Source: Octopus sinensis
Taxonomy: Eukaryota
Direction of reading: 5' to 3'
NCBI RefSeq assembly: GCF_006345805.1
Contig: NC_042998.1
Span: 41,292,001 to 41,356,000 of the forward strand
DNA length: 64,000 nt
This document shows, piece by piece, positions 8,607-49,504 of the stretch (positions within the stretch are counted from its first letter, which is position 1; every line of letters begins with the position of its first letter). The position numbers and the translations under genes were made by a program. The notes beneath the pieces are model-generated. The model saw only the letters and a list, made by a program, of their open reading frames with translations. It was not told the origin of the DNA and did no database searches.

Positions 8607-8779
8607 ATTGTAAAAGAGTCTCTTGATTGCATTCAGAAAAACATTCAAGATGCTGATACTCAAAAATTGTATATGTTAACTGAAAGTGGTGATGATGAAA
8701 GTAAGGACATTATGGCCATTTCAGATCGGCTCCAGTGTCAGTGGAAAAATGTCAATGAAGCTTATTCCAAACGCTACAA
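8607..8779 (+). CDS. Dys: Dystrophin exon equivalent to human exon 43 (173 nt, phase 0 to 2): IVKESLDCIQKNIQD...LQCQWKNVNEAYSKRY(K)
   Basis: Polypyrimidine tract plus ccccag acceptor, AA|gtaagt donor. QWKNVNEAYSKR resembles human QWEKVNKMYKDR. Confidence 0.92.
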
Positions 8780-8821
8780 GTAAGTCCCTTTTATTCTTTG
8801 CAACAAAGTTATTGGGCCCTT

Positions 8822-9200
8822 TTATCTTTATTGTTACTTGTTTCAGTCATTGGACTGAAACCGAGCTGTGGCACCACCATGAAGAGTCTTAGTCAAATAA
8901 ATCAACCTCAGTACTTAATTTTTTAAAGCCTGGTACTTACTCCATCAGTCTCTTTTGCCAAACAGCCAAGTTACAGGAATGTAAACAAACACACAGCCAA
9001 CACTAATTGTCAAGCAGTGGTGGTGGACAAACACTAAGACACACACACACATAATTGGCTACTTTCAGTTTCCATCTACCAAATTCACTCACAAGGATTT
9101 GGTCATCCCAGGGTTACAAAAACACTTGCCCAAGGTGCAATGGAACTAAACTTGAGCTCCTACCCCCAACCTTTCAGTTACTTTGCTACTTATGCAGGTA
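8822..9200 (-). mobile_element. tRNA-type SINE, family B (CORE-like ccttgggcaagt domain)
   Basis: Reverse complement of the 28245-28630 copy: acttgcccaaggtg, tttcagtttccatctaccaaattcactcacaagg, cttgtttcagtcatt. Starts about 40 nt after the exon donor. Confidence 0.85.
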
Positions 9201-9698
9201 TGTAATTTTAAAAATATTTTCATGTTTTTTGTCTTTTTTATACTAACCTAGTTTTAGGAATTAATATCTAATTTATTTTTATCCTGTCACACTGCAAGGG
9301 CCTTATAATTTGAAGAGTAATATTTGTAATAAGAGATATTACTTGTTGCTGCAGGGTACTCTATGTTATAGGGAAGGAAGCTATATTTTAATTTCAGGTT
9401 CTCTGGCATAACGGTGCTATTCATATTTAGGTTACTTTTGGTAAATTTAAAACAAATTAATTGATTTTGGATTATAGTTCTGCAGATACAATAAACTACA
9501 AGCATTCTTTACTTTATGGAAGACTTGTGTTCCTGAAAATCTTGGTGTAATGTGAAACTTATTTATTTTTCCATTGACATTCATGCTTCATGGAAGTCAT
9601 TGAAGAGAGGAAAACATGCTTCACATTCCAGAACATCATGCTAATATACAATTTTCGAAAACACAAATTTCCATAATGCAGAGCATGCTTGTATTTAA

Positions 9699-9711
9699 AC
9701 ACACACACACA

Positions 9712-9752
<41 letters not shown>
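9699..9752. repeat. (CA)n(CT)n microsatellite
   Basis: Seen directly. Confidence 0.95.
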
Positions 9753-9756
<4 letters not shown>

Positions 9757-10659
9757 TTGAACATTTGAAACAATATATTATAGTTTGTATTAATCATACA
9801 AAAATTATTGTTTTCTCTTTAAATTTTCTCAGAAAGAAGAAACGTTCACTAAACTTAATGTAATTAAATTTAATATTAATCATTTGAAATCTATGTGAAA
9901 CTCGGCTATCTAGTCATTATTATAACTTATTCTTTTACTCAGTTGGAGGTTAATGATAGTCTTTTCAAACATTTAATATTCATTTTGCTGTTGGAAAGGA
10001 GATAAAGCAGCAGAGCCAAAATGAAATGACACCACCGCATTTCATGAAAGAAATAAAGGAAAAATACATCAATCCTCTGCCATCTGTTACTGTTGCACTA
10101 ATCTATATTTTAATTGTTTACAGTAGAGGCGTATTCTGAATCAGTGCTCCTCTCCTCATTTGTGGTTCATTTTTCCCTACTTTATTACTGTTAACACAGT
10201 TGGTGCTTCAACAGCTTCTCAGCATGTGTTTACCTTGCTGTTTTTAATGTCACAAGCTCATTAGTCAGCATTCACCTTCCTCATGTTGTTTCTCAGAAAT
10301 TTTATATTAATATTTTATGTCAAATCTTGACATAAATAAAATGAAGCAGCAATCTTTAAAATCCTTAGATTTTTCATCCCTCCACTTAAAATGATTGTTC
10401 TGCCTTATTGCAGATGTTTCAAAAAAAAAAAAAAAAAAACCCAGCTCCAATACTCATTAGAAGACTCACTTTTATTTCACAGATTTCTATCAACTGCATC
10501 ACAGTTACTTATTATTCTCTGATGTATAATAAAATTGTTTTCTCACCATAACTTTATTAGAATATAAATGTTATTAATACAGCTAAGTATAAAACATATG
10601 ACAGCTTTATTATATATTTTGATTTTTTATGTCTAATCTACACTCTATCACTACATTTG

Positions 10660-12900
10660 AAGTATTTCTGTATCGTCATCACTTTACATCTGTTTTCCCA
10701 TGTGACACAGGTTGGATTGATTTGTTCTAGTAAAGCGTCTTGCCACTTTCCATGGTCTTTCATCATTTATGATCTTCCTCTGCCACATAGTCCTTCACTT
10801 ATATTGTTCAAGGATTTTTCACCAAACTGTTATCCTTAATAGACCTCAAATATCTGTACTAACACACTCTTCTTGCTTGCATTATGGCTGATTCTTCTGA
10901 TAATCTGTTTTTCTCTCAGCTAATCTATGCTCCATTGTTCACATGTATACTAAGTGTACACCTCCAGTGGAGCTTGCTTACCTCCTTTCTTTACACATCC
11001 TTTTTATTCAATGCCTATTTTTCCATTACCATACAGTATTGTCACTTTGTACACAAGAAGTATACAATCTGAGAAAGCTTGTGTTGTCTCCCGAAGTAAT
11101 AACTCCTTGAACTTTTCCCACCTCATTCTCACTCTGACTATTATGCATTTACCACAAACTCCTCTACTGTTGATTAGGCTACCTAGTTAATAGAAGCTAT
11201 GAATTACTTCTAGTAAATGGTTGAAAGATTTCATTTTTGGTGTTTCTTTTACATATGAAGTCCTACTCTGTCAATCTGCTTGTAATTCATTCTAATGCAT
11301 ATAATGAAAACTTAGTACCCATAGTTTGCATTATATACAGTATAGAATTCCTACTTACTCTATTTCTGCAATTAAGCATTACCACTTTCCAGTAGGTAGT
11401 AGAGTTCTGTTTTTTTTTTTCCTGCTAGCTAAGCTAAAACTTTTATCTTTCGTAGGTTGTTGTTGTTTTTTGGTTTTTTTTTTGTTTTTTTCTCACACCT
11501 CTCAGTTACAGGCCCTGCTCTCATGTTTAGAACTTTTCTAATTCTTCAGCTGATTCAGCTATGAGAACTAGATTGTCACAATGATCCCCATGGATAGTTA
11601 TGAATTCTTTTTATACAGCCTAGAGAATTATGATAACCAAGATGGGATTGAGAACTGCGACTTAATGGACATCTTGCATTCTAAGTATCTCTAGGTCATT
11701 TAATGTTAGTTATTGTGGTTTATTCTCAGCTAAAAACTTCTGTACTTGACTCACTAAGAAATGGTTACATGCCATGGCATAAACTCAAACTGCTTCTCAT
11801 TCAATACATTCTCTCTCTAGTTTTCATGACTTGATCCATCAATTTAATATCTTTGTACTTTCTCTTTTTTATCTTTGCCAATGTAGCAACTGAACATAAT
11901 ACTGTAATGTCAGTTACAGGGGATAAAACTTCACTGCACTATACCAAGACAGGTATACAACACCCTTAGGTACTACATCATCAATCTAAACTTGCTATCC
12001 TTCTCACTTGGTCCAGATGAGCATTATGCAACACATTGTCACAGAAACAACTGAAACACTGATAGCCCTCACTAGCTCCAAACACTACTGGGGTACAGAC
12101 CACTAACAATAAGGGCAAAGAAACAGTCCACCATACTCGCAAGTCTTTTCTGTACAGGCATACAGAAATAAACTTGAAAATGGAAATTAATACAATCAGA
12201 GACAGTAAAATAGATCTGTGAGTTGTATTTCGTCCTTGTTTCCATGTGTGACCACAAACCAACAGAACTGGTGTCCTTAATGGTCATTTTCACTATATCG
12301 TAGTTACTATATCTAGGTGGTCTCTCTGTTGGATCTATATGGATAGTATCTTTTTTTCTTTTATATTCTCTACATTCAACAACTCATAGTAAGCATTCCC
12401 AGGCCTCTTTCTTGTCAGCATCAGTGAGGGTAAGTTTACACCTACAATATTACATACAGTTTTCCTAGTTCATACTGACCCACTGCCTCACTACTTGGAA
12501 CTCCTGTTCTTTTGATTTTCAATTTTCAGGATGTTGGCAAACTTTTTATGTTCATTTTCTCTCCCTGCTAAGCATACTAGCGCATACCTACCCAATGCTG
12601 TTCCTTTTCTTCTACCGCCTTTCTTCCATTCTTTCTAGACCTACCTTTTAGCCTTTATGGCTTTGACTACCTTGTTCTAAACTTTTAGTTGAAACCTGGC
12701 TCACCCACAGCCCTGGTATCTTTGCAGAAGATTGTCACATAGCAAAACCTAGCTGTCATAGTTCTCACTTTCATCGCTTATTGCCAGAGGCATATTTTGT
12801 GCTTCTTGAAAGTTATATACAATGAAGGCATCATTCAGATTCCAAACCTTACTTTTCTAAGTTTGTCTTCTGTCTCTGAAGCTCTTATCCTGAAGTCATT
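10660..12900 (-). mobile_element. Decayed RTE-clade LINE (RT region and 3' part); boundaries approximate
   Basis: Minus strand gives Y(K)DIKLMDQVMK, QFEFMP and QVQKFLAENKP remnants of RTE RT, followed by a 3' region similar to 37641-38100. Confidence 0.65.
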
Positions 12901-13571
12901 GATTGCTTGTCTCTGTTGAGTTTTACAATCTTCTCTGGACAACATATTTACTTTTATTTTGTTCCTCAGCTTCCCTTACAGTAAAACAGTTCTCTGATAA
13001 ATTGTCCATGCATATATATGTCTACACGCAATGTTGATACAAATAGACAAGACACTGACTCATTGACAGTGGCCACACTAACTGCAGAAAATGCTCATCT
13101 CTCAGTACAGAATCCATTGGTCATGATGGAATTATAGTTATTCTTATCTCTAGTGATGGCTCAGGTCCTAACAAGCAAATTTCTTACCTTCCACCAACAT
13201 CTATTCCATAGTAAGAAAGTATGCATAATACATTTAATATCAAAAACAAAATAAAGTGGCACACATCTCAAATTCATTATAGTGATGAGCACATAAGAAA
13301 CAAGTTAACCATATCTACATGTGTAGTCTTCATTTTCAGTTATCAGTGGGTTGTAAAAATTAGAAATGCTAACTGAATGTTACATTTAACCAGCCATTTT
13401 TCTCTGCATACCATAGATCTGCTTAAATAGAGAGCATGGGAATTACCAACAAAATTTCAAGATGACTGTCTAAATGCAAAGTTATTGCTTTGGACACTTG
13501 TGAAGTTATCACTGAAATTTAGGATGCAAATCTTAATTTTATGCCCCTATAGTACGGAAATATAATTAATT

Positions 13572-13931
13572 ACGTTAGCCCCGTGCTAGTAGGGTATTAG
13601 GAGCACCATACGAGCGTAATCGTTGCCAGAGCGGCTATCTGGCCTCCGTACCGGTGGCAAATAAAAGACACCATTCGAGCGTGATCGTTACCAGCACCAC
13701 CTTACTGGCACCTGTGCAAGATTCGAGCGAGGTCATTGCCAGTACTGCCTGACTGGCACGTTAAAGCACCCACTACACTCTCGGAGTGGTTGGCGTTAGG
13801 AAGGGCATCAAGCTGTAGAAACTCTTCCAGATCAAGATTGAAGCCTGGTGCAACCATTTGGTTCGCCAGCCTTCAGTCATTCATCCAACCCATGCTAGCA
13901 TGGAAAGTGGACGTTAAACGATGATGATGAA
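13572..13931 (+). mobile_element. 3' UTR fragment of RTE LINE (5'-truncated, CpG-rich, with internal ~50-60 bp sub-repeats)
   Basis: gcacccactacactctcggagtggttggcgttaggaagggcatc...ccaacccatgctagcatggaaagtggacgttaaacgatgatgatga, the same tail that follows RT-coding sequence at 38100-38522. Confidence 0.85.
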
Positions 13932-15750
13932 TAGATGTATATATCTTTCTTACTGCAACATGTATAAAATAAATGCTTTCCAACCATTCACATCAGATAC
14001 ACAGCAATTCTAAAGTGATGAATTTGGACCAAAATATGTACAGCACTAAGATACTGACTCTTTTAAAAATTTCATTTCTCATGTTATCAGCGAAACACTT
14101 TCTTCAGATTGCATTTGAGAAAAATTGGACTGGCAACAATATTGTCAAAAACTTCTTCCAGCCTTTCTGTCATTTATGAAAATATTTTGCTCAATCCTTT
14201 TTTGCATTTATTTGACTAGACCAAATACTCACCTACAATGAACCAACATGAACATTTAATATTTTGATGGTTCATGGTATAAGGCCACAAATTTTTAAGT
14301 AATTGTAACTCATTGATTCAACTATAGTACATGATTGCTATTTATTTTATTGAGCTGTGATATATGAACGGCTAAGTCAATTCTGAAGGTATTAGATATC
14401 TGAATATACAGAATATAATACTTTAAAGTGTGTTTGAACTAGTCCTCTGACTTTTCTGCAATTTCATCATTGTTATGCAAACATGTTCAACTATATTAAC
14501 TTGACCCAACTCTTCTAATTCAATATCAAGGAACTTCTTAAATGTGGTTGCTATAACTGTGAATAATAATACTTAATAATATTAACATTGCATCAAAAAG
14601 CCCTTAAAACCTATCAGTCTAAGTGCCCCAAGTACTTGAATAACTCAGAAAAGGAAATAATAAGTGAAATCATAATTCAAAAACTTATACAAACATCAAT
14701 AGTATGTATGGATATGTATGTGTGTGTATACACACACACACACATATAATCAGGCAAATTTTAAAATTAAATATGACAAAAAACATTTGTATGTTTGAAA
14801 TATTCCATTTTTATACTGAGCTCAATGAAAGATTTCTGCTGATTATAAAAGTTTTGATGTAGGATTTGATCATTCTTTCTAGACAGTACATATTCATTGA
14901 AGTGTGTGTGTGTGTGCACGTGCGTGTGTATGTGTGTGCGTGCATGCATATATGTATGTGTGTGGTCATTAACAGACAAAAATAGACAACTTTTTCAAAT
15001 GCCATACATTTCATTTCACTTAAATTTTAAGGAAATTTGAAATAAGATATAACACTGCAGTACAATTATTAGACTCTGACCAGTAATGAACTGGGTGGAT
15101 TTTATTTTATTTTTATTTTTTAAGAAAGAAAAAAAAAACCTTGATATAAAATAACATTAACTTATAGATTTGCTTCATAAAGAAAACAAATCATGACACA
15201 TAGATATTGATTTCACAACACACCACTGTGCCAAGACAAACAGTTTGGAAACTGAAAATATAAATACCAAGTTTCATGCAGTAAAAACATTTTTATAGAA
15301 TAATAATGTTTACATTTTAATAATAAAAAAAAAATTGTGATAAATCAAGACAATTATATTTCAGTAGTAATTTGTTGTGGTTTGGGTGAGCTTGTTTGAG
15401 TCAATGGTTTGGAGATAGGGTATATGATTCAGAGAACGATGATTAGTGTAAGGCAGGGATAGAGCACGTGTGCATTAAGCATAAAAATTACTACTATGCA
15501 TAAGAGAGGCAGTCATGAAGAATTAACAACTGTTTTCAACTGTGACTTTGGATTTGATACAAATATTGTCAACTAGTATGTTGTTTCATAAAAGTCTTTA
15601 AAACAGCAGCATCTTATCTTCTACTTTACCCTGCTCTTTATGAAATAGCCCCTTCGTAATTTTTTCCCAGAAGTACTACATCAGTGATGTGTGCATTTAA
15701 AAACAATGAGTGTTTCGCGAGCTTACACACATACACACAGCTTTCACTAT

Positions 15751-15918
15751 CACCTGGTGATTTCAATGTTGATAGTTGGATTAATTACTTTACCAGTATA
15801 TAACACTATTAAACAGTTTCAGTAATCTATATAATATTTTACTGTCTCTCTTTCTCTCTCTCTCTCTCCCTCTCTCTCCACACCTGTTGGATATATATAT
15901 TTACACACACTCACACAT

Positions 15919-15955
<37 letters not shown>

Positions 15956-16023
15956 CAAACCCCTTAATTTGACAGAGCACCTGTTACAGTTCAGTTGTTC
16001 TTGTGACTTAGAGAAAACACCTG
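15751..16023 (+). promoter_or_regulatory. Candidate intronic enhancer or internal promoter: four co-oriented CACCTG E-boxes
   Basis: CACCTG at 15751, 15881, 15978 and 16018; CACGTG at 15465 and CAGCTG at 16297 nearby. I recognise no TE here. Function is inferred only. Confidence 0.35.
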
Positions 16024-19000
16024 CTTAAATTTAGTGGTGTGGTCAATAACACTCCAGCAAAATGCGTGAAAACACATATTCAAAATGTCCTACCACTGTT
16101 ACAAACAATAATTACAACAACAACAATAATGACACAACTGTGTCCAACAGCACTATTTCATGTGGGACCATAACCATCCCTTATGATCCCCAACTCCTCT
16201 TGTAAGTATACATATTTTTTCTGACCCCACCTCTAATCAGTAGCCGACTACTGTTGATTTTTGTTTTCTTTCAACATCTCATGATTTTCTTGTCCTCAGC
16301 TGGTGGTCTAGTGTATATACCATGCTCCATCCTGTCATTTAAGCATGCTTTATTCTTATAATCATTTTCAAATATTTTGTCTAAACAGAAACAATTTTCA
16401 TATAATGTTAATGCGAAAGATTTTACCAGTATATTATTTTTTCACTCGTAAATGTTACATATTATTCAGTTTTAATTCTTATTCATTTATATTCTTTTTT
16501 TTTTTGTGTACTTTTGCAAGTAAACTACTACCCCTTTCAGCTACTCATGTATGTATTCATTCACTTAGATGCTCGTATACATTGATAGAATAATACAGTT
16601 GAATGTGTATACACCACACGCGCGCGCATTTACTGCGCTAATATCATTGAATGCTTTTATTCTGCATGTATTTTAGTGTTCTGGATATTTCTCTCCAGCA
16701 CTATATGTGCTGGTAAAGCTGATTGCATACTATTGATTTTGTCATTGTATATATATATATATCAACACAGACAATTATTAGTTGAATCCGATTTCCCAGT
16801 TAGTCATCGCCAATTGTATACTACCGGTTTCTTTATTTAAACAAACTCTACTTTAGCTTGCTTTTTTGGCTCCAGTTCACATCTACACTTTAGTTAGATA
16901 ATTTTTGCCTATCAAAATTTTTAAAAGCCTACTGAAAATTATCACTATGCGTTAAATCTATGTTCATGTGCACATATGAAAAAATAACAGAGCTAACATT
17001 TTCCTAAACATCATTCCCTGTCATTGTCTTGATTATCTTACTCATCCCCTCTTGCTTTTACTCTTTAACATCAGTAACAGCAGCAGCAGCTGCAGTAATT
17101 AGGAGTATTCATTCAGCTAAATGTATTCATCAATAACAACCAATTGTAGATGCACTTGCAATTTTTTTATTGATTTGCTAACTACAAGTTCTTTACTTTA
17201 TATTTCTGTAAACTGTAATAGGTAGGTGAGAATGCATTCTTGAAAAACTAGTACACAATTGGAGTGTTAAACCTCTTCCACACATCTATTTTCATTTCAT
17301 TCAGACATATATTGATCTGTAAGCTAGAATAATTATGTCTAATGACTTAATTATTCTAACTTACCTAAACACATGCATACACAAACAAACATAATATATT
17401 ACTTATTTACATTGCATAAATTGTTTAATTATTAATGTATAGTGGCGTAAACTACTCTAAGCTTACTCATAAAGAGCCAAAATATACTTCTTATTTGCAG
17501 TCGAGTCCATTCTAAACTATTAACTGGAAATAGTTTATGGCAAAGTTCTCTAGTATCAAAGAGATGCTAAAAAGAGATGGATCTTGAAGTGTAGATTCAA
17601 ATTATCCTGCTCAGATTAATCTTAATCAATGTTATTTATAAAGTTTTAAGAAGTTTGCGAATATATTTAATGAAAATAATTTATCCAAGTAAATAAAATC
17701 TTTAAAGTATTTAAAAATTATCTTTTGAACTTGTATTCCAAATTTTTTTTGATGCAATAAATCAATGCACTAAATATGCCTTTGGCTTCTTTCTTTTCAA
17801 GGTTTCTTGAGCTAAACATAGTTTCTGTAGATATTATTAAATAATTTTCTCTAATCTATTTTCTGATGTTTACACTGAAATAATCTGACTCATTACTGTA
17901 TTGGCTAATTCACTTTCTCATAAATTGTTGGAATACTCATCATGACTCATGGGATAAAAGTCCTGGGATTATTAAAGCTCCCTCCTTTATGTAAGACCAA
18001 TAGAAGTGTCTGCAAAATTTCACCCAAAATGTCCTGTTTACTCCCATTCACTTGAAGCTGATTTTATATATCATATAACATTTTGTCTTCACTATTATAA
18101 GAACAATTCTGAGACATGACTTCATCTACTTCTTTTAATAAATCCCCTGTCTAACTTTCTTTAACATTCATGTCTTATACCCAAATACGACATTTGCTGC
18201 TTAACTTTTGCCTCTACTTATATTCTGCACATACACATCTTATCCACCCTTCACTTTGTCTCTCTACATTGTGCTCTTCACTATACTCATTAGTGAAGTG
18301 AAGCATCTTTAACTGGATGTGAAACAGTTCAATTTGCAGAGAAGTTGTACCTAACATGAAGCCTATCACTATATATTCTATACACATTGGTGATTATAAC
18401 ATAGTTATAACAAATTTAAATGATGAAATATAGTATTGTATTTATTTATTAATGAAATAAAGATCACAATTTATAAACAGCCACTCCTTTGTTTAGATGT
18501 GCAAGAAAGTGCTTATGATTGCACTGAAACCTGAAGGATGTTTATATCTTTACCCTCAGAGTAAACAAAAATTATTTCCAGCATTGAAAAAGAATCTCCT
18601 TGTTGAATCTGGTAAGCAACACGTGTCTGGATGTTACATCCCAGATTATAACAACTTGTATAAAAATGCTGAGAACCAGCCAAAATTTCACAATCAGTTT
18701 AGAGTAGTCATGTTCCTTGTGATTTACGAGATATATGCAAAAAACAGTGGAATCCTCTATTTGGAGTATTCATGTAAAAAAAAATCAGCTTCACAGGTTT
18801 CTAGTATGTACTTGTGTGACTTGGATTCACTGATATTCTCCTAAACAATTCAAATCACAATTCATAGCTCCATATTGGATCCAGATTGGATCCGTTATAT
18901 TTCATTATAAGGTAAAATACTGTTGTGTTGTAGCTCTCACAAAGAACAGTTTTTATCATACTCTGATTTCTAAATCCATTAAATATACTATTTTACATGT

Positions 19001-19989
19001 GCATTGATTGTGGATTGATAAAGCATTCTCAACTTCATGTAAAGACAAAAACTTCAAAGATGTGTTAAGGGAACTTTACTTCACTGGTGACAATATTGTA
19101 TTAGTGAAACATTTTAACGAAGAAAGACGCATCAAACCACAAAAAGTTTATCATTATTGATATGTGTGCAATCCGTGTTGAAGCAAGGTATATTGTTTTG
19201 TCTTTGTTGAGATTTGTGAAGGAAAAGATGCAGTCATGTCACATAGACTATATGATATTTGTAATATATTGTCTTTTAGTCTTTTTTCAGAAGTTGATAT
19301 ACAAGGTATTATGCACATGAATTTATGGCCTTGACAGTATGTTACATAGATATTGGAAAAAAAAAACAAATAATAATTAGGTAAAGATGCTCATTAATTA
19401 ACAACTTAAGACCAGTACACTGCAAAAGGGGAAATGAAATTATAAGGGTCTAATGTGCAAGAACATAGTCAAACATCAAACAATGGTCTAGAAAACTACT
19501 ACAATTGTGAACTGTAATATCACTGTTTACAATTAGTTCAATTGGACTATTTAGTGTTGTATGTTACTACGGAAGCAGCATGATGTAGATCTGGTGTTCA
19601 GATACCGTCAAGTGTGAAGCTGAATAAATCACTCTGCTTATGACTCAAAAAAAATTAGTCAAATTGGTGTTAAGTTTGTTTCTCACTGATCTGAGTCAAA
19701 AATCTTTCCTAGCTTAAATTATCCCTTGTAATAGCAGTAATAATATACTGATTTAAGATTAACTGCTAGTTGGTGTTAAACAACTTTGGTCAGCTTTCTG
19801 CAGTAACCGGACAAACAAAAGAAACTTTCAGGTCTTCACTTATTCCAGCATTCAGTATGATATGGGGCCAGAATGTGCTGTGTTTTGTTCAAGTTACTAT
19901 ACAAAAATAAAGTCTTGTTTATCAGTATGAAAAATGGTTATGATGAATTAGTAAGATGCTAGTTTTATAAAATTCACTAAAGGTGGATG

Positions 19990-22900
19990 AAAACTGAGCA
20001 CAAAATTGATATTGTAGTAACTTTTGTATATTGTATTTTGTGCTCCTTTAGGTCCCTAGCAGAAAACAAATTGTATCCTATTGCTCAAGGTATTGTTGAT
20101 GTGTTGAGCCGTATTTGGACATATAATTACAGAGATGGCCTGGATAGAAGCATAATATTTAAGTTTTGGTGTTGTTTTACCCTTTTGGTAATTTTTGGAT
20201 ATGGTGGGTTGTCTGTAATGATGTGGGTGTTTTGAAATAGCCTCCAGCTGAGAGATTGGCATTTCAGCCAGGCTGTTGCTGGCTTCTTTTGATTAGGATT
20301 TTATGTCAGTAAATGTTTTCAATGAGTTAAGCTGTTTTCTGCAGTTTGTGTGTCATCTATGTGTTGATTCGTGGTCACTGAGGTAATGTATTTTTTTTAT
20401 CCGTTAGTAGGGGCTGTGAGGAGCTTGCAGCAATAAGAAATTGTATGTCCTGGTGGCATTACATTTTCAGTATTTTTGTTTCATTGAGATAGTTTGTGGG
20501 TGTGATCTGTGTTCAACTTAAGATAATGAAGAGTGCACTATTTTACATTCATTTTAATTTTCTTATTTGTTGTGTAAGAGGACTGGTATAATCCATGATG
20601 GATCAAATATATTGTTGGCAAACAACTGTTGTTTTATTGTGTTGGTCAAATGTGAGTGCTCCCAAATTTCTCATATCTTATTTTCCTTTATTTAAGCTAC
20701 CTTCAACATGTAGTGTAAATGTTGTTAGAGGTGTTTCATGTAATTTTTAATATTTTATCATTTGTGTATGTGGTATGTTTATGCTATTGAGTGTGGTGGT
20801 TGGCTGTAATTGACATTATCTGATGTTGGTAATAAGAGAGATGCTGGGTGTGGCAGGTGCCTCTGTTTGTTATTTTGGAGTCATGTTGCCAAGTAATTGG
20901 ACTAGCTGTAATTGTGTTGTGTCTGGCAAATAGTAAAAAGTTGATTTGTGATGCCATCTGCAAGTCTGTATCTGTTGGGGTTGTACTGTTTTGCAGCCCC
21001 AAGTAAGCTCTAATTGAGCAGTCCTATGGAGTGTAAGTAGTTATTTAGATATTGTAACTCGTAGATCTGTTTGTTTTTGTGTTTTTTGTTATGTCTCCAT
21101 GCATTTGAGAACATATTGTACACCCTGATATGCAATAATAAATTGTACAGGGGAACTATGTGACAGTCTGAACATCCTTCACTCTCTCCACTGATCAGTT
21201 TGTTACTGCACACTCACATAACTGGTAGTGACTACAACAAAGGTGAACAAGGTCAGTTCAGTTATACATGTCTATGGTGGACATCTCTGTGCAATATTTG
21301 GGTATTTGGGTCTAGTGATGCTTTTGAAGTTGTAGCTATTTCATTGTCCATGTGTATTTTTTCTTCTTCTTTTACATTTACTTTGATTGAGTGAGAGAGG
21401 GTGTTGCAGTATTCTTTAGTTTTGTGTGAGTGTCTGTCTGTTGTAGGGATAGGCATAGTTGTGTGATTAAGAAGTTGGCTTTCTATTCATGTGGTCCCAC
21501 TATGCAGTACCTTGGGCATCTTCTATTGCCTCTGGCCAACCAACATTTTGTGAATGGATTCGGTAGACAGAAACTGAAAGAACTCTCTCTCTCTCTCTCC
21601 CCATCCTTGACTTGACATCATGTGATAGTTATAAACAAACACCATTGTCATATAAACAAGGTTGTTCATTTTAAGTCTCCCATGAGAAACATGTTTGACC
21701 ATGGAAAAGTGTTATCTTGAAAACAAATAAGAGTTGGCGACAGGAAGGGCATCCAGCCATAGAAAATCTGCCTCAACAAATTCCATCTGATTCATGCAAA
21801 TATAGAAAAGTGAACATTAAATGATGATTTGTGTGTTTTATGGTGAGTTTTAATGTAAAAGCAGTAACTGAGAGTGAGGTTTGTTATTATAAAAACTGTA
21901 CTCCATGCAAGTTTAAGTGGTCTTTCATTTGTAATATCATTGTTATGTTGATAGCTTGTGTTCAGTCCGTAATGATGCATAGTGTACTGTTCTGTTTACT
22001 ATTTTGTTTATTGAGGTTCCTCGTGGAGAGATTAAGGACCCAGGTAGAACTAGTATATTCCATGGTAATTCTAATGCATTGTTGGTGCTCTAGGTAGATT
22101 TGTGTCTCATTTTTCTTTCTTTACTATGTCTTTTGTGAGTGTTGTAAATATTGGAGATGTGTTGTATGTAACTTTGTAAGTATCAGCTTTCTGTATGGGG
22201 GTTTGTTGATATTGTTGGGTTTGGTAGTTGATCGTATTTGATATTTAGATCAAAAAACTGTTTCCCTGCTGGCCAGAGAGACTGAATTTGGTAAGTGCTA
22301 CTTATAGTCTATTATTTTGGAACTAAGTTTGTGGATGAATAATGTAGAGTCTGAGGAGTTGTGCATATGTGTCTGGAGATTGGCAACAGGATGGTGTTTG
22401 GTGTCAGTCATATATGTGTATATATATGAGATCATATGTATGTTTTGAGAAGTTGCTGGAGGGCATGGCTTGAAAAGAGTGAAATGACAAATCTGTCTAG
22501 TTCTCTTTTTAGGAAGCTGAAAATTCTAGAAGTGTTTTTGCCTACTACATAGTCTTGACAATATGATTTTGTGTGAAGTAGATTTTCTTTAAGTGAATAA
22601 GTTTTGCTAATGGAAAAAGTGGAAATTAGCACGGTGCATGTGACAGGTTTTCTTTTCTTCAATAAAAAATAATTTTTGTATGTTAAGTTCATGAGTATAT
22701 TAAGTATAATGGGCTAAATCCATGTTCTGATTTGAATTAAATGTGTAGGTTACTGATGTCATGGATTAGTATTTTTTTCCAGAATGTTTGAGGTTGTGCT
22801 TAGGAGTGTAATGGGCCTGTATAATGTTACTTTGTTTGGGCTTTTGTTGGGCTTTAGAATTGTTTATGATTTTTCTCATTCTCCAAATTCTGGGAATTGG

Positions 22901-23900
22901 GCAGTGTTGGTACAAGTAATTGAAGATATTAGTTAATGCAATGATCCCTTCAAGTTTTTGATACTGGCCCTGAGGCTTTTGAGTTTCCAGAATATTCTAT
23001 TGCTTGTTTTTGTTTGATGAAATGAAGATGACAAAAATCATGATCTAGGTTGGAAGTGTATAGTTTTCATTTTATGTTCTTGTCTGATTTTTAGTGTTTG
23101 ATTTTAGCAAAAAATGTCAAAGAACATTTGCTTGGTACTGAAGTATGGCTATTTTGTTCAATGTTGTTGTTGATAATTATTCTATATAGTGCTTTAATGC
23201 CCATTTTCTAGTTTGTATTCAATACAAATGTTTGCCAGTTTTCTGTTTTTTGTTGCATGTGGTGTTGGTGCAGTATCCCAGAGCTTCCTGACTTTTGTGC
23301 AGTTGTCTATTATTTCTGATATATTAATTGGTCATATATTATATTACCTTCTGGGATGTACTTTTGGGATCATTTAAAATTATTTTATTAAATGCATGTA
23401 CTGCATTGTCTATATTGGTGAATTTAGGTGATATGGAAATAGGGAAACCTTAATTCTGTTTTTGGTGGAACTCATTCCAATAAGCTTTTTAAGTTTGTAG
23501 AAATGTATTTGTTTCCTTCATTAAATATTATTTGTTTCCTTCATTAAATGTTATTGTTTCCTTCATAGATGGTCTAAGAATAGTTGGAGGATCATTGTTG
23601 TGGTAGCTAAATGTTTAGTACAGAAGTTAATGTCTGGAAAAGTTATAGTTGGCTTGAAAGTATGTGTGCATTGGTATAAATTCTTTTGTATATAAAGGGA
23701 TTTTAGTTTATGAGGCAGTTGAAAGCATTATTGGTATCAATAGTGTATTTTCCTTCATTTTTTTGTAACCCTACAGTATCCTTTTTGTTAAAAGTTTGTG
23801 ACATCTTTCTCAAGTGAATATAGTATACATCTGGTGTATGGGTTAGTTAGGGTGAGTAGTTTGGTTAATATTGCTTAAAATATTCACTATCAGTTCCAAA
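19990..23900 (-). mobile_element. Heavily decayed I/Jockey-group LINE relic(s): PHD-like, APE endonuclease and RT remnants
   Basis: Strong G/T strand skew. Minus-strand remnants include SGNSKASGP, LTNIFN, EHGFSP, PVTCTVLIS (RT), SDHES (endonuclease) and CSDCH...IRV (PHD-like). Interrupted by a SINE at 21449-21830. Confidence 0.6.
21449..21830 (+). mobile_element. SINE with family-B head and RTE-like tail
   Basis: Head ...gtaccttgggca...ggtagacagaaactgaaagaa; tail ttggcgacaggaagggcatccagcc...gtgaacattaaatgatgat. Confidence 0.75.
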
Positions 23901-24399
23901 TGATAATAATCAAGCTAACAATGAATAACAATGAAAAATGACTTATGTGTTATATATATATATATTTTAATTTTCTTCTTTGTGGAAGGGCTTCGCTCAA
24001 CCCATTAGGATACTTTTATCTCCCCATGGTTAACAAACTTATCCATATTCATGAACTTCACTGAATAATTTTTGCTAACATAGACCACCACTAGTTCCTC
24101 TGATTCTTGTTTTTATTTGGTTTTTATATAAATAGGTGTGTGTAAGATTAATGTTATATGAAAATGCTTATTTATCTATGTTGTTAGATAATGCATTGTC
24201 TGCTTCTACCATTAATTTTATTGTCCTGAACCATTTATCACACACAAGAGAGTTAAGATATTAATTCAAGAATTCATAATTTTGATTTTCTTTATTATTT
24301 ACTTTCACTACTGGCAAATTATTATCATTTTAATGTATTAATGTAGAATAATATTTTAAATAATAATATAGGAAAATATTTACTTATTTGTTTACCCAA

Positions 24400-25750
24400 A
24401 TTGCAAGACAATGTACCAGAGAAAATTGAGACATTGTTAGCGAGAAGGGTATTGAAAATGATACCTGCTTTTAACAATGCTAAAAAGTAGGAGGCAAGGA
24501 AATGTTATTTTAAGAGATTGTTGAATGAGGACAATTTGTGGAAGAGAGAGAGCACCTAGTCCTAAAATACTCAACAGAGGCACCAGCCTTCCAAATTGAC
24601 AGATTATAATAAGTAAAATAATTAAGGATTATGAAATGGGGGAAGCAACTGGACTGTTGGATATAATAGTTGACATGCTGGAAATATCTGGCAGGGTAAA
24701 TCGTGCACTAGTCTTATGCATAGTCAATCAGGTAGGACAAGAAAGTATTTAGCAATGAATTTATCTGAAAGTTGTTGTCCAGTATAACTCAGTTGTTCAG
24801 CCACCATCTGTTTATTATAGTTCTCCAAGTTATACTGAAGAATTCAAGACAGCTGTCTATGTGAATTGATTTTGTTTTCATAAAGAGAAATTGCTGGAAT
24901 TGAGAACCTCAAAGTAAACTTTGTAAAAATTTTAAAAGTTGGATAGAAGACAGTCATGGTACCATGACAGAAATAGCCAATGTTTGATATGCAGAAGAGG
25001 AGTTGGTTGGAATTACATATGATGCACCTATTGTAAACTAAGGAATACAAAACATGTAATGGGATTTATGAAGGAAAATACAGCAAACACGCAGGTATAA
25101 GTAAACATTAAGAGTACTATGAAATAGATTTTCCTAAATATTTATAAGAAGGCTCCCTAAAAATAGTTGATAGCTTTTGTTATCTAGGTGACCTAATTAA
25201 CAGTGGAGGTGGATGTTTTGAGAGCACAGTATCCAGAATAAGAATATAAGAATGGGTTGCATAATGTTCAAGGGGTTATTACCTCTTTAAGTTTCCTTCA
25301 TCATAGATGGTTGTACTGTTTAGTGCATGTGTATGAAATTCAATGATGCCTGGTTGCAAGGCACAGAACTTGAATGCAAAAGATTGGCTAAGAGTACAGT
25401 AAAATGAAGCAAGTATGATCCATTGTATGTGTAATGTTAATGGTCATAAACAGCAAAGTACAAATGAACTGAGAGAAAACTGACTATAAGAGGAATCAAA
25501 TATAGTGTGAAAGAGAGAAGACTTCACTGATGTGTGCATATGGAGGATGGCAGTTGTATAAAGAATTTCTTAGTGCTCCAAATTGATGGAACCTTTAGAA
25601 GTGTGAGAGACAAGGAAAATTTCCTGTGAAATATCGAAGACCAATCTTATGATATGGAACTTCGTCAAGGAGATTACAGAGTAGAGAGATGATTGCCAAC
25701 ATGTGGGACTGGAGAAGATTTGACCACACATGCAAACATGGAACTTATTG
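24400..25750 (+). mobile_element. Decayed RTE LINE
   Basis: Remnants of MKxGKATG...DMLEISG, VDSFCYLGD and NEASMIHCMCNV, ending in a catgcaaacatggaa-type tail. Confidence 0.7.
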
Positions 25751-31355: not shown

Positions 31356-31357
31356 TC

Positions 31358-31424
<67 letters not shown>

Positions 31425-31440
31425 TTCTCTCTCTCCTCTC
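31356..31440. repeat. (CT)n/(CTAT)n microsatellite
   Basis: Seen directly. Confidence 0.95.
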
Positions 31441-31776: not shown

Positions 31777-31912
31777 ACGATGGAGCAAAGCTGTCGAGCA
31801 ATGGCGCCAGTTCCACTGTGACTTGAAGGATATTATGTCATGGCTTAATGAAGCTGAGAAGAAACTTACTATAGCCAAAGAACTTGCCCCATCAGACAAA
31901 CAGCTATACAAG
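31777..31912 (+). CDS. Dys: Dystrophin exon equivalent to human exon 44 (136 nt, phase 2 to 0): RWSKAVEQWRQFHCDLKDIMSWLNEAEKKLTIAKELAPSDKQLYK
   Basis: ttgcag acceptor, AAG|gtaaat donor. Completes the AA+A Lys codon from the previous exon. Strong match to human RFDRSVEKWRRFHYDIKIFNQWLTEAE. Not in the ORF track. Confidence 0.95.
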
Positions 31913-33017: not shown

Positions 33018-33193
33018 GAATTAGAGAATGGAATCCGATCTCATCAAGGAACTGTAAATAGCATGAATGCAGCAGGCAATGAAATAATTCGTCAGTCAGC
33101 CGCTCCTGATTCTCATCTGTTGAGAGAAAAGCTGGATGCTCTTAATCACCGATGGAAATGCTTGTGTAAAGATGTTTTAGAAAGACCTGACAA
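33018..33193 (+). CDS. Dys: Dystrophin exon equivalent to human exon 45 (176 nt, phase 0 to 2): ELENGIRSHQGTVNSMNAAGNEIIRQSAAPDSHLLREKLDALNHRWKCLCKDVLERPD(K)
   Basis: tttgtag acceptor, AA|gtaagc donor. Matches human ELQDGIGQRQTVVRTLNATGEEIIQQS...LQEKLGSLNLRWQEVCK. Not in the ORF track. Confidence 0.96.
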
Positions 33194-35519: not shown

Positions 35520-35559
35520 TAGAACTGTATTTCATATATATGTGTGTATGTATATATAG

Positions 35560-35604
<45 letters not shown>

Positions 35605-38719: not shown

Positions 38720-38864
38720 GTATGATAATGAGAGTATTAAAACTAGTGAGTTCACTGATGACATGGATGAATTATTTTTATGGATTGATGAAGCAGAAAA
38801 CCTTTTGAGCATTCCATTAATTCAAGGTGAAGAAAATTTAGAGGAAACCTATGACAAATTCAAA
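38720..38864 (+). CDS. Dys: Dystrophin exon equivalent to human exon 46 (145 nt, phase 2 to 0): YDNESIKTSEFTDDMDELFLWIDEAENLLSIPLIQGEENLEETYDKFK
   Basis: ctgcacag acceptor, AAA|gtaaat donor. Matches human SEFQRDLNEFVLWLEEADNIASIPL. Lies inside ORF 38574..38918. Confidence 0.93.
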
Positions 38865-41798: not shown

Positions 41799-41948
41799 GA
41801 AATGGAAGATGATTTACCAACACATCAGCAACAACTGAAGGCACTTAACCGCAATGCACAACATATGATGAAGCAAGACTCTTTATCTAACCAGGATAAA
41901 GAGAACATGAGTAAAGATCTTGAAAATCTCAATACACGATGGAAAAAG
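41799..41948 (+). CDS. Dys: Dystrophin exon equivalent to human exon 47 (150 nt, phase 0 to 0): EMEDDLPTHQQQLKALNRNAQHMMKQDSLSNQDKENMSKDLENLNTRWKK
   Basis: Long pyrimidine tract plus ctttag acceptor, AAG|gtgagg donor. Spectrin helix B/C with terminal Trp. Confidence 0.94.
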
Positions 41949-42241: not shown

Positions 42242-42433
42242 TTGATAGTTGCAATTCCAGAACGTGTGAAATTTTTAGATGTGAAGCTCAATACTTTACA
42301 AGTCTTCCTGAAAGATCTTGAGGAGTTACAAACGTGGATTACTGGAACCAAAAAGGTTTTAGAGGCCCAACAAAATCCTACTAACTCAAATACTGTCTCT
42401 GAAGAACAAGATTCAGTTGTTATAGATCCACAG
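42242..42433 (+). CDS. Dys: Dystrophin exon equivalent to human exon 48 (192 nt, phase 0 to 0): LIVAIPERVKFLDVKLNTLQVFLKDLEELQTWITGTKKVLEAQQNPTNSNTVSEEQDSVVIDPQ
   Basis: ttttag acceptor, CAG|gttagt donor. AIPER resembles human ALPEK; helix-A Trp present. Confidence 0.92.
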
Positions 42434-45653: not shown

Positions 45654-45870
45654 ACTATGCAGAAAGCTTTGAAAGCACGGCAAGTAAATGTAGACAATAT
45701 CAATCACAAGTATGGTCAGATGGTGAAAGAAGGACAACGGCAGAATATTAAGATGACAGATGCAATTCAAGACCGAGTTGTTCAGCTTAACAACGACTGG
45801 GAACACATACAAATAATGGCTTCTCAGATGAAGCCAGCTTCAGAAGCAGTTGTTGAAGTTATGAAAAAAG
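45654..45870 (+). CDS. Dys: Dystrophin exon equivalent to fused human exons 49+50 (217 nt, phase 0 to 1): TMQKALKARQVNVDNINHKYGQMVKEG...RVVQLNNDWEHIQIMASQMKPASEAVVEVMKK
   Basis: cttttccttgtag acceptor, AAG|gtatgc donor. Human 102+109=211 nt also ends in phase 1. Confidence 0.92.
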
Positions 45871-46527: not shown

Positions 46528-46715
46528 TAAAAGTATCCCATGAGATGCAGCAAGCAAACCATTTGCCTCATGCCGGCACTGCTCGACATTCAGGCTATGA
46601 CAAATCTGTAAATGACATCATGGATTGGTTAGCTTTACAGAATCGAATGCAGAAAGTCAATAAAGCTGTGATTGGCAACATATCTGATATTGAGCAACTT
46701 ATTGTCAAACAAAAG
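46528..46715 (+). CDS. Dys: Dystrophin exon equivalent to human exon 51 (188 nt, phase 1 to 0): (V)KVSHEMQQANHLPHAGTARHSGYDKSVNDIMDWLALQNRMQKVNKAVIGNISDIEQLIVKQK
   Basis: Pyrimidine tract plus taatag acceptor, AAG|gtaggt donor. VIGNISDIEQLIVKQK matches human MVGDLEDINEMIIKQK. Confidence 0.94.
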
Positions 46716-48047: not shown

Positions 48048-48097
48048 ATCTTTTTTTATGTATAAACATTTTTATGACTTTATAAAATCATTTTCAG

Positions 48098-48215
48098 AAT
48101 ACTTTGCAAAATATGGAGAATCGACAACAAGATCTTGAAGACATTCTTCAGAAAGCATCAGTATTACAAAAAGAAACTAATTCTTCTGAAGTTAAGAAGG
48201 CAGTTCAAGAGAAGG
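48098..48215 (+). CDS. Dys: Dystrophin exon equivalent to human exon 52 (118 nt, phase 0 to 1): NTLQNMENRQQDLEDILQKASVLQKETNSSEVKKAVQEK
   Basis: ttttcag acceptor, AGG|gtaaat donor. Matches human ATMQDLEQRRPQLEELITAAQNLKNKT. Not in the ORF track. Confidence 0.94.
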
Positions 48216-48322
48216 GTAAATATAGTTTTTCTTATTAGATATTTGTAAACTTCAGCATCATCACCACTACTACCATCATCATAATTTTTATCTTGAGAAG
48301 ACCTTTTGAGTTTAGTAAAATT

Positions 48323-48857
48323 GTAGTCATTGCTGATGTCAGTGCCACCTGACTGGCTCCTGTTATGGTGGCACATAAAAAGCACCATTTGAGCATGGTC
48401 AATTCCAGAGCTGCCTAACAGTCCCCCATGCCGGCTGCACGTAGAAAGCACCCACTGCACTCTGAGTGGTTGGTGTTAAGAAAGGCATCCAGCTGTAGAA
48501 ACCTTACCAGATCAGGCAAGCTGGCAGAAATATTAGCACACCATGCAAAATGCTTAGTGGTATTTTGTCTGCCGTTATGTTCTGAGTTCAAATTCCACCG
48601 AGGTCGACTTTGCCTTTCATCCTTTCGGGGTTGATAAATTAAGTACCAGTTACGCTCTGGGATCGATGTAATCGACTTAATCCCTTTGTCTGTCCTTGTT
48701 TGTCCCCTCTATGTTTAGCCCCTTGTGGGCAATAAAGAAATAAGAAACCTTACCAGATCAGATTGGAGCCTACTGTAGCCTCCTGGCTTGCCAGTCCTCA
48801 GTCAAACCATCCAGCCCAGGCCAGCATGGAAAGCAGACGTTAAACGATGATGATGAT
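48323..48857 (+). mobile_element. RTE 3' UTR fragment, split by a nested SINE
   Basis: Same tail family as 13572 and 38100. Continuity is restored when 48516-48761 is removed. Confidence 0.88.
48516..48742 (+). mobile_element. SINE family A nested in the RTE tail, with 19-bp target-site duplication
   Basis: TSD agaaaccttaccagatcag at 48497-48515 and 48743-48761. Confidence 0.95.
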
Positions 48858-48869
48858 AAAAACTCAGGA

Positions 48870-49230
48870 ACTCCTTTCATCATTAGTATTAGGTTGGTAT
48901 GAATTGGAGTGGTCTGCAATACAATTTATTTACATACAACCATTCTCATCTCATCTGTTGGGCCCAATATTCAAAGATCCAACCTCATCACTTCTTCCCA
49001 TGTCAGTTTTATCTTTCTTTACTTCAGTACCTTCCACTGTCATTACACAGTACTTTTTCCATTCAAAATAGTTAACATTGCTATTTTGTTCAATGACTGT
49101 GATACACATCTCATTTCTCTTGTATTGCTTTTCATGCAATTTGATGTTACACCCCAACATACTAAACTCATTTCTCTTGAACTCTTGTAGATTTTTCAGC
49201 ATTTCTGATTCAAATGCCATGGTATTTTTT
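48870..49230 (-). mobile_element. Decayed RTE LINE 3' coding fragment
   Basis: ORF 48951..49220: LQEFKRNEFSMLGCN...MTVEGT, matching the RTE ERNEASMLRWMCN...TVEGT region. Confidence 0.7.
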
Positions 49231-49301
49231 CAAAAGTTTATTTCCATATACCTCTCTCTACCTTTGTCACTCAATAAACAGTTTTTTTCTTTATTTTGCA
49301 G

Positions 49302-49504
49302 CTGATGAAATAAGCCATCTTTGGAATGACACAAGATCTGCAGTTTCATCAAGAAAGACTCACTTAGAGGATATGTTACTTGAATGTCGACAGTTTGATG
49401 AAACATACTCTGCATTTAACCGATGGTTACACCAGATGGAAGATGAGGTGAAATCAAAATCACATAACTCTCGAGATATTACAAAATCACTTTCAAACTA
49501 TAAG
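49302..49504 (+). CDS. Dys: Dystrophin exon equivalent to human exon 53 (203 nt, phase 1 to 0): (A)DEISHLWNDTRSAVSSRKTHLEDMLLECRQFDETYSAFNRWLHQMEDEVKSKSHNSRDITKSLSNYK
   Basis: ttttgcag acceptor, AAG|gtaaag donor. LWND...RKTHLEDML resembles human QWDE...RRQQLNEML. Confidence 0.94.

Follow-up and report, generated by a model that had tools for sequence, protein, structure and literature searches.

In this study, we describe a 41-kb piece of the putative dystrophin gene of a non-gastropod mollusc, which would encode 566 rod residues and whose introns seem to have been inherited from the protostome-deuterostome ancestor, a reading to which we assign a probability of roughly 0.93. The window, by which we mean the whole 64-kb stretch of DNA analysed, covers the rod part, and the N-terminal calponin-homology actin-binding and C-terminal WW/EF-hand/ZZ parts lie outside it. 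Ten plus-strand exons, here called A to J, were found at 8607-49504 with the phases 0-2-0-2-0-0-0-1-0-1-0 along the series, and splicing them together gives a stop-free frame of 1698 nt (566 codons). The features are as follows, with the E-value of each exon against a profile of dystrophin orthologues.

Exon A, 8607..8779, plus strand: 173 nt, phase 0 to 2; counterpart of human DMD exon 43 (173 nt); profile E=2.5e-6 at HMM 303-357
Largest intron, 8780..31776, plus strand: 22,997 bp, repeat-rich; counterpart of human intron 43
Exon B, 31777..31912, plus strand: 136 nt, phase 2 to 0; counterpart of human exon 44 (148 nt); profile E=5.7e-12
Exon C, 33018..33193, plus strand: 176 nt, phase 0 to 2; counterpart of human exon 45 (176 nt); profile E=8e-22
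Exon D, 38720..38864, plus strand: 145 nt, phase 2 to 0; counterpart of human exon 46 (148 nt); profile E=7.7e-11
Exon E, 41799..41948, plus strand: 150 nt, phase 0 to 0; counterpart of human exon 47 (150 nt); profile E=1.6e-12
Exon F, 42242..42433, plus strand: 192 nt, phase 0 to 0; counterpart of human exon 48 (186 nt); profile E=3e-13
Exon G, 45654..45870, plus strand: 217 nt, phase 0 to 1; counterpart of human exons 49+50 fused (102+109=211 nt); profile E=5.7e-18
Exon H, 46528..46715, plus strand: 188 nt, phase 1 to 0; counterpart of human exon 51 (233 nt), its hinge-3-like start being shorter; profile E=2.9e-7
Exon I, 48098..48215, plus strand: 118 nt, phase 0 to 1; counterpart of human exon 52 (118 nt); profile E=1e-4
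Exon J, 49302..49504, plus strand: 203 nt, phase 1 to 0; counterpart of human exon 53 (212 nt), with 3 codons fewer in a loop; profile E=1.4e-14

The acceptors of all ten exons consist of a pyrimidine tract followed by AG (for exon A, ttcactccccag directly before the exon), and the donors, all beginning with GT, are in order gtaagt, gtaaat, gtaagc, gtaaat, gtgagg, gttagt, gtatgc, gtaggt, gtaaat and gtaaag. Since open frames of the given length and phase between an AG and a GT arise by chance 4-19 times per exon in 42 kb, such a splice pattern alone is unconvincing. The profile HMM was built from 13 dystrophin orthologues, with the window excluded, and run against 2870 six-frame segments of the window, where its significant matches were exactly exons A-J, colinear and with E-values from 8e-22 to 1e-4. 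No other dystrophin-like segment was detected by this profile in the six frames of the window, where nothing matched outside HMM 303-869, and none was detected inside the 22,997-bp intron by either tblastn or the profile; tRNA and Rfam searches of the window returned no matches. The exon lengths and phases claimed in the initial annotation are thus upheld by the coordinates, the canonical splice sites, the stop-free frame of 566 codons and a profile recovering the same ten segments, and we infer that this copy is transcribed and spliced as predicted.

Human exon boundaries were taken from published HGVS tables, which confirm the human exon sizes used by that annotation, namely 173, 148, 176, 148, 150, 186, 102, 109, 233, 118 and 212 nt. 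The human peptide in the alignment (585 codons) is not a database record; 13 residues with published positions were used to anchor the human numbering, and the peptide carries each of them, it shares 69-70% identity with the database dystrophins of turtle and alligator, and the snake DNA junctions for introns 47-50 agree with it. Coincidence of alignment column and phase was computed twice, by MAFFT and by hmmalign, the latter leaving the last 12 residues of the window product and the last shrimp exon unplaced, so that the placement of these two is that given by MAFFT and by counting residues. All 11 window junctions have the alignment column and phase of human introns 42-48 and 50-53, and at 9 of the 11 (introns 42-48, 51 and 52) the codon is identical; introns 50 and 53 have the human phase at positions that agree within small indels. 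Intron 50 is phase 1 in all species, with a profile position scattered over 701-712; since the surrounding hinge is rich in indels, its placement is good only to about 6 residues. Taken singly, both junctions of exon A share column and phase with human, Patella and Tubulanus, those of exon B fall at profile positions 359/phase 2 and 410/phase 0 as in human, the split codons of exons C and I align to human R2205 and I2554, respectively, the junction of exon F agrees with snake DNA (L004 exon 22772-22936) and with human, and exon H ends in ..LIVKQK/ against human ..MIIKQK/ (the slash marking the splice junction), every species having this junction at profile position 773/774. By chance, 9 internal introns would coincide with 9 of the 10 human sites with a probability of about 3e-23, and in simulation the number of shared introns had a mean of 0.05 and a maximum of 3. 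Thus the homology proposed for all nine internal introns stands, with intron 50 placed to within about 6 residues, as do the four identical exon lengths (173, 176, 150 and 118 nt), and all lengths are equal to their human counterparts modulo 3.

Introns were also mapped in Lytechinus, Tubulanus, Patella, Thamnophis, Batillaria and the shrimp Halocaridina by exact protein-to-genome alignment with a unique GT/GC-AG solution per junction. Introns 42-48, 51 and 52 have identical profile position and phase in the window and in human, and also in Patella, Batillaria, Tubulanus and Lytechinus wherever these are covered. Exon lengths recur too, exon C being 176 nt in Patella and Tubulanus, exon D 145 nt in Patella, Batillaria and Tubulanus, exon E 150 nt throughout six species with covering DNA, the shrimp excepted, exon F 192 nt in Batillaria, exon H 188 nt in Patella and exon I 118 nt in Batillaria and Lytechinus. 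A layout common to the window, human, two gastropods, a nemertean and a sea urchin indicates introns older than the protostome-deuterostome split, and this origin, which the initial annotation had proposed and which is now read from the DNA of Batillaria, Patella, Tubulanus and Lytechinus, is well supported; the introns are thus probably shared by common descent. The region would then be part of the mollusc's single dystrophin gene, encoding the central spectrin-repeat rod and corresponding to human residues 2040-2624, and its introns would have come down from the dystrophin gene carried by the last ancestor that protostomes and deuterostomes share. Intron loss, gain and shift would have been rare in slowly evolving lineages such as molluscs, nemerteans, echinoderms and vertebrates, so that phases, and often exact exon lengths, could have been preserved even as protein identity fell to about 27%.

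Human intron 49 was described as the only intron missing here, which agrees with our results: human exons 49 and 50 correspond to one uninterrupted exon G, in which the frame is continuous and the alignment gapless over the human intron-49 site, located between the codons for ..AIQ and DRVVQLNNDW. The accompanying choice between a deuterostome gain of intron 49 and a loss here is not supported in that form: a deuterostome lacks the intron as well, and so do three further lophotrochozoans, so that the loss would not be specific to this gene. The intron is present in human and in snake DNA, and absent from all 4 lophotrochozoans (the window, Batillaria, Patella and Tubulanus) and from the deuterostome Lytechinus, the fused exon measuring 217 nt in Patella, 220 nt in Batillaria, 208 nt in Tubulanus and 232 nt in Lytechinus, and in the shrimp a phase-0 intron lies at or adjoining the human site. 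Shrimp exon L005:47316-47585 ends AAG/GTAAGT, and since read-through would stop after 9 codons, the donor at L005:47585 is real; its junction lies in the MAFFT column of intron 49 in human and snake and has the same phase, and the 34 residues following a conserved motif align without gaps. Either a gain within chordates together with a parallel crustacean gain, or two or more losses of an ancestral intron, would account for this distribution.

It is about an even bet that intron 49 arose by insertion in the chordate or vertebrate lineage once echinoderms had split off, the same proto-splice site (..K/) having been hit independently in the shrimp. The absence of the intron from the window, both gastropods, Tubulanus and the sea urchin, together with its presence in snake and human, points in this direction, and lineage-specific gain is made plausible by other intron turnover nearby in the shrimp gene, in which introns 43 and 44 lie 9-10 codons away in a different phase and intron 48 is missing; however, two gains at an identical codon boundary and phase are needed. 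Alternatively, and with a likelihood falling somewhat short of one half, intron 49 may be ancestral to bilaterians, kept in vertebrates and the crustacean, with two or more losses, one basal to the lophotrochozoans sampled and another among echinoderms. The real shrimp donor at the column and phase of the vertebrate intron argues for such an ancestral intron, but the shrimp alignment is weak (about 20% identity), its exon L005:47316-47585 was left unaligned by hmmalign, the downstream exon of the shrimp model looks spurious so that only one side of the site is anchored, and two or more independent exact losses are required. Under either history, the intron-49 site would offer a clean way to test recurrent loss against parallel gain.

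As for the exons themselves, at least one call might be wrong, for example if exon A or I were a chance frame or another nearby splice site were used, in which case the match with human would be less complete. Exons A and I are weak when taken singly (profile E=2.5e-6 and 1e-4), tblastn alone detected neither at E<=1, and several chance AG..GT open frames exist per exon length. Against this, the orthologue profile finds both, as the sole matches at their expected profile coordinates, both are required for the frame, and their lengths are exactly those of human (173 and 118 nt), so a miscalled exon seems improbable. Exon B draws tblastn matches from 12 HSPs, and the boundaries of exon J are conserved in a second species. 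When exon J was compared with contig L007 of a related species, from run SRR11869384, the two were 94.6% identical with no indels, the flanking introns being 66% and 79% identical; third codon positions hold 9 of the 11 changes, and both splice sites are identical. Exon J is under purifying selection, with conserved splice sites, which indirectly favours the predicted transcription and splicing.

The predicted product is a rod-domain piece of dystrophin, and the gene a protostome (mollusc) orthologue. Pfam PF00435 Spectrin matches the spliced product in four stretches (E=5.9e-45), and the best full-length matches are named dystrophins and utrophins, colinear with it at about their residues 2050-2600. 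The dystrophins of Antedon, Pituophis, Patella, Tachypleus, Tubulanus and Lytechinus match nearly the whole query with their residues from about 1800 to 2660, and PDB 9c3c chain D, a full-length dystrophin, aligns query 18-544 with chain residues 2057-2592 (E=7e-88). In the tree, the window product is sister to the gastropod dystrophins (96/94) inside a lophotrochozoan clade (96/95), and the remainder tracks the species phylogeny, with Lophotrochozoa, Ambulacraria and vertebrates each recovered. A search with the window's own product gave Batillaria as the sole match; one with the crinoid region gave echinoderm, hemichordate and bowfin dystrophins, and did not find amphioxus, cnidarian or cephalopod ones, and the best 120 matches of a homology search with the snake dystrophin were sauropsids only. 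It is very improbable that the exons come instead from another giant spectrin-repeat gene of the dystonin/MACF1 or nesprin type, the intron match being a general feature of spectrin-repeat genes: proteins of dystonin, MACF1 and nesprin size do occur among the matches, at E 1e-61 and weaker, and the Pfam Spectrin_SYNE1 model is likewise reported for the product, but these matches break into many short stretches (14-18) to differing repeats, whereas dystrophins give the best scores in a single colinear end-to-end match, the tree among dystrophins reproduces animal phylogeny, and the exact-nucleotide exon lengths (173, 176, 150 and 118 nt, and 145/192/217/188 nt with molluscs) are specific to dystrophin orthologues. 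Vertebrate contamination was rejected on the 27% identity to vertebrates and the placement among molluscs in the tree, and a pseudogene on frames and splice sites that are all intact.

The finding is sound but ordinary, such intron conservation being expected of slowly evolving animal genes. For dystrophin, introns shared by orthology were already described in the sea urchin and the fly, an intron 'orthologous' to human intron 55 being spoken of in the literature, and sea urchin dystrophin was studied earlier by Wang et al. 1998, as cited in PMC1790709. That lophotrochozoans and cnidarians keep human-type intron positions is established, with genome-wide conservation in Platynereis and Nematostella according to Raible et al. 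2005 and Sullivan et al. 2006, as these are cited in PMC3096672. Because intron conservation with slow invertebrates is established, and such dystrophin introns were known from invertebrates, existing knowledge is left unchanged, and the history of intron 49 is the only point of some evolutionary interest. The claim that the reading-frame rule of this region predates the split is borne out by shared phases and by lengths equal modulo 3, so that exon deletions follow the same frame arithmetic as in human; the exon 43-53 phases behind the Duchenne/Becker reading-frame rule, common to molluscs, nemerteans, echinoderms and vertebrates, would therefore be more than half a billion years old. The layout may be of some use in annotating invertebrate dystrophin genes and in picking invertebrate models of exon skipping.

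Among the genes compared, those of the gastropods encode the closest proteins; that of Batillaria attramentaria (KAK7483286.1, locus L006) shows 38-40% protein identity and shared exon lengths of 145, 150 and 192 nt, and that of Patella caerulea (KAK6187729.1, locus L003) shares lengths of 173, 176, 145, 150, 217 and 188 nt. Both gastropod genes have the 49+50 exon fused as in the window; the window differs in branching outside the gastropods, and the Patella model is without equivalents of exons 52/53. The sea urchin Lytechinus pictus (XP_063954745.1, locus L001) has introns 45-48 and 50-53 at the same position and phase and a single 49+50 exon, but carries an additional 108-nt exon between the equivalents of exons 51 and 52 and a longer hinge. 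The Platynereis and Nematostella studies concern the same phenomenon on a genome scale or in other genes, whereas the present case is one segment of one mollusc gene. With human DMD exons 43-53 (residues 2040-2624), the window shares exon order and the phases at eleven junctions; however, protein identity is only about 27%, the exon 51 counterpart is 45 nt shorter at the hinge-3 end, and the counterparts of exons 44, 46, 48 and 53 differ by 3-12 nt. The window introns measure 0.3-23 kb, the whole human DMD gene being given as about 2.3 Mb in PMC10377302, and it is to the human locus, and not to this one, that the term 'deletion hot spot' applies.

Each of the ten dystrophin exons proposed in the initial annotation, equivalents of human DMD exons 43-53, was recovered on the forward strand by a mechanical scan for AG/GT-bounded open frames of the proposed lengths and phases. 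Human boundaries were taken from published HGVS whole-exon deletion descriptions.

Window exons recovered by the AG..GT open-frame scan, with the human DMD equivalents (PMC7327972, PMC2386868)
8607-8779, +, exon A; human exon 43, c.6118-6290
31777-31912, +, exon B; human exon 44, c.6291-6438
33018-33193, +, exon C; human exon 45, c.6439-6614
38720-38864, +, exon D; human exon 46, from c.6615
41799-41948, +, exon E; human exon 47, c.6763-6912
42242-42433, +, exon F; human exon 48, c.6913-7098
45654-45870, +, exon G; human exons 49 (c.7099-7200) and 50 (c.7201-7309) fused
46528-46715, +, exon H; human exon 51, c.7310-7542
48098-48215, +, exon I; human exon 52, c.7543-7660
49302-49504, +, exon J; human exon 53, c.7661-7872, followed in human by exon 54, c.7873-8027

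The ten acceptors all show AG behind a pyrimidine tract, the ten donors all begin with GT, and the spliced exons form 1698 nt (566 codons) free of stops, with phases 0-2-0-2-0-0-0-1-0-1-0 and introns of 293-22,997 bp. The splice pattern by itself proves little, because AG..GT open frames are common: 4-19 frames of the given length and phase were found per exon in 42 kb. When a profile HMM of 13 dystrophin orthologues, the window left out, was searched against all 2870 stop-free six-frame segments, exactly these ten exons gave the only significant matches (E 8e-22 to 1e-4), colinear along profile positions 303 to 869. The same search gave no window match to the profile regions flanking 303-869, so the first 8.6 kb and last 14.5 kb are intron and the neighbouring exons lie beyond the window. 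In tblastn with eleven homologues, 79 of 79 HSPs fell within eight of the exons and none elsewhere in the window. Exon J is further covered by a second, related species, whose 1660-nt contig (run SRR11869384) aligns to window 49161-49892: the exon is 94.6% identical with zero indels and both splice sites identical, and third codon positions account for 9 of its 11 substitutions, whereas the flanking introns show 66% and 79% identity and align with numerous gaps.

The predicted product contains spectrin repeats (Pfam E=5.9e-45). Among 1.84 billion representatives searched, the best full-length matches were named dystrophins and utrophins (crinoid, snake, limpet, horseshoe crab, insects, fish), each aligning colinearly over a single long stretch near residues 1800-2660, and the best partial matches were dystrophins of gastropods, nemertean and sea urchin. 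Among PDB entries, a full-length dystrophin (9c3c chain D) matched with E=7e-88, query 18-544 on chain residues 2057-2592. Proteins of dystonin, MACF1 and nesprin size scored lower, their matches consisting solely of numerous short repeat-to-repeat stretches. In a maximum-likelihood tree the window is sister to four gastropods (support 96/94), within a clade including the nemertean (96/95), with arthropods, ambulacrarians and vertebrates in separate groups of their own; the window therefore carries the dystrophin orthologue of a mollusc outside the sampled gastropods.

The HGVS boundaries give human exons 43-53 sizes of 173, 148, 176, 148, 150, 186, 102, 109, 233, 118 and 212 nt and phases 0-2-0-2-0-0-0-0-1-0-1-0, in agreement with the values given in the initial annotation. 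The equivalent of human exon 51 is short in the window (188 nt). For human dystrophin residues 2040-2624 in the alignment we used a working sequence that is not a database record. This segment has exactly 585 residues, as required, shares 69-70% identity with turtle and alligator dystrophins from the databases, and carries the correct residue at 13 of 13 published positions (D2043, R2095, R2098, Q2118, E2194, L2213, Q2325, Q2522 and R2553, PMC3607557; E2147, V2257 and Q2366, PMC5891934; M2461, PMC1790709). In the other animals, annotated proteins were mapped exactly onto their own genomic loci, with one GT/GC-AG solution reproducing the protein at every junction.

Exon lengths (nt) in the compared animals
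Tubulanus (nemertean): 173-151-176-145-150-147-208-191-115-212-155
Patella (limpet): 173-142-176-145-150-156-217-188, then 155
Batillaria (gastropod): ..145-150-192-220-209-118-212-155
Lytechinus (sea urchin): ..154-150-189-232-224-[108]-118-212-155
Thamnophis (garter snake): 165 (exon 48), 102 (exon 49), 106 (exon 50), then exon 51

When 18 sequences, this human peptide among them, were aligned with MAFFT, 11 of 11 window junctions were seen to share column and phase with human introns 42-48 and 50-53 (i42-i48, i50-i53), and they match the other invertebrates at every site these cover. A second, independent alignment to the orthologue profile placed window and human together at i43 (profile position 359, phase 2), i44 (410, phase 0), i45 (468, phase 2), i46 (518, phase 0), i47 (568, phase 0), i48 (632, phase 0), i51 (774, phase 0) and i52 (813, phase 1). 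The intron i50 has phase 1 in all species and sits in an indel-rich hinge, where its profile position varies: 701 (nemertean), 702 (human), 706 (the window, Patella and Batillaria), 709 (sea urchin) and 712 (snake). Within alignment uncertainty it is one and the same intron across species. At i53 the last window exon ends in phase 0 at the MAFFT column of the end of human exon 53, directly preceding the phase-0 intron of the other invertebrates; exon J is three codons shorter than its human counterpart, in a loop. Random placement would yield 0.05 shared positions on average, and the chance probability of nine of nine is ~3e-23. The observation in the initial annotation is confirmed, and its main reading was right that the introns are homologous and anciently shared, their positions being common to human, gastropods, nemertean and sea urchin where covered.

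Intron 49, described there as either gained in deuterostomes or lost here, is indeed missing from the window, but that wording does not hold, as sea urchin and three lophotrochozoans also are without it. In human and snake a phase-0 intron separates ..QPVK/T from R/KKLEDL; the aligned site in the window (..AIQ / DRVVQLNNDW) is uninterrupted coding sequence, as it is in Batillaria, Patella, Tubulanus and sea urchin, so the lack is not special to this animal and reaches a deuterostome. Two histories remain, a gain within chordates with a parallel gain in a crustacean, or an ancestral intron lost at least twice. The shrimp Halocaridina (L005 47316-47585) has a phase-0 intron at the same MAFFT column as vertebrate intron 49. 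Its exon end at 47585 is real, since the donor is strong (AAG|GTAAGT) and translation past it runs into a stop within nine codons. Alignment in this part is weak (~20% identity), gapless for 34 residues past a conserved motif; the orthologue profile does not align the shrimp exon at this site, and the downstream exon of the gene model appears spurious. In the same gene i43 and i44 have moved by 9-10 codons and switched phase, and i48 is absent, indicating that introns have turned over in the shrimp lineage.

Several features of the compared genes were observed alongside. In Patella (L003 53459-60909) the model runs from the exon-51 equivalent straight to the exon-54 equivalent, and tblastn found no exon 52/53-like sequence in the 7.4-kb intron between them; the missing in-frame 330 nt (110 aa) is about one spectrin repeat. 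Either a genuine, naturally occurring "exon 52-53 deletion" or incomplete annotation may explain it. Between its equivalents of exons 51 and 52, Lytechinus carries an additional 108-nt exon (L001 17949-18056) that begins and ends in phase 0, a crinoid protein has a homologous insert, and at the same junction an alligator isoform has a 12-residue insert and a Candidula model a long one; the exon 51/52 intron seems to be a favoured place for cassette exons. Also in Lytechinus, the intron immediately before the exon-46 equivalent (2823-2977) contains two partial duplicates of that exon's 5' end (L001 2332-2358 and 2660-2710). The Thamnophis "dystrophin-like, partial" model opens with 128 residues (L004 501-1688) that do not belong to dystrophin and look transposon-derived; its dystrophin exons proper begin at 22772. 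In Pituophis isoform X5, 19 residues are inserted where exons 48 and 49 meet. The window's equivalent of human intron 44, the intron with the Dp140 promoter in tetrapods (PMC1790709), is only 1,105 bp (31913-33017). The largest intron is the intron 43 equivalent (8780-31776; 22,997 bp), and it might hold an internal promoter, because published work ties large dystrophin introns to such promoters.

The window is AT-rich (G+C 27-44%), with abundant microsatellites and interspersed repeats, as expected for a large invertebrate genome.

Repeats and mobile-element remnants in the window
816-975, 3889-4117, 28896-29031, 29480-29645, 40393-40627, 48519-48743: SINE-like family, ~225 bp, both orientations, copies 72-89% identical to one another, all within dystrophin introns
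13756-13952, 38345-38538, 48292-48515, 48743-48856, 62351-62513: second repeat family
56099-56860, +: degenerate non-LTR retrotransposon remnant, two ORF pieces matching RVT_1 (E=4.6e-6 and 4.5e-4, under the Pfam cut-off)
57576-58504, 51319-52302, 37648-38143: diverged related copies of this remnant, 65-76% identity
60710-60934, -: short ORF with the motif ..HQDNA..YSPxxxPSDFHLF.., which we take to resemble the C-terminal part of mariner/Tc1 transposases; no Pfam match at E<=0.01
34700-36300, 50100-50450, 52400-53000, 54300-55800: very long TA/CA-type microsatellite blocks, yielding many spurious ORFs (Y, I, C, H, M, T residues) on both strands

The shared exon layout is explained by inheritance of the gene's structure in the ordinary way. 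The segment encodes a portion of the dystrophin rod, a structure that connects cortical actin with the dystroglycan complex in other animals. Introns are seldom lost, gained or moved in slowly evolving metazoan lineages, so that exon phases persist as the sequence drifts to 27% identity, and because every window exon length equals the human one modulo 3, the same exon-deletion combinations would keep or break the frame. The human deletion "hot spot" stems from how unstable the very large human introns are; nothing corresponds to it in the window, where introns are 0.3-23 kb. Jin et al. (2007; PMC1790709), with reference to Wang et al. 1998 and Neuman et al. 2005, describe isoforms of sea urchin and Drosophila that arise in the intron "orthologous" to human intron 55. 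Our literature search found no publication mapping rod-domain exons 43-53 in a mollusc. The general rule of intron conservation nevertheless predicts the layout seen here, and the window is a new example of a known phenomenon.
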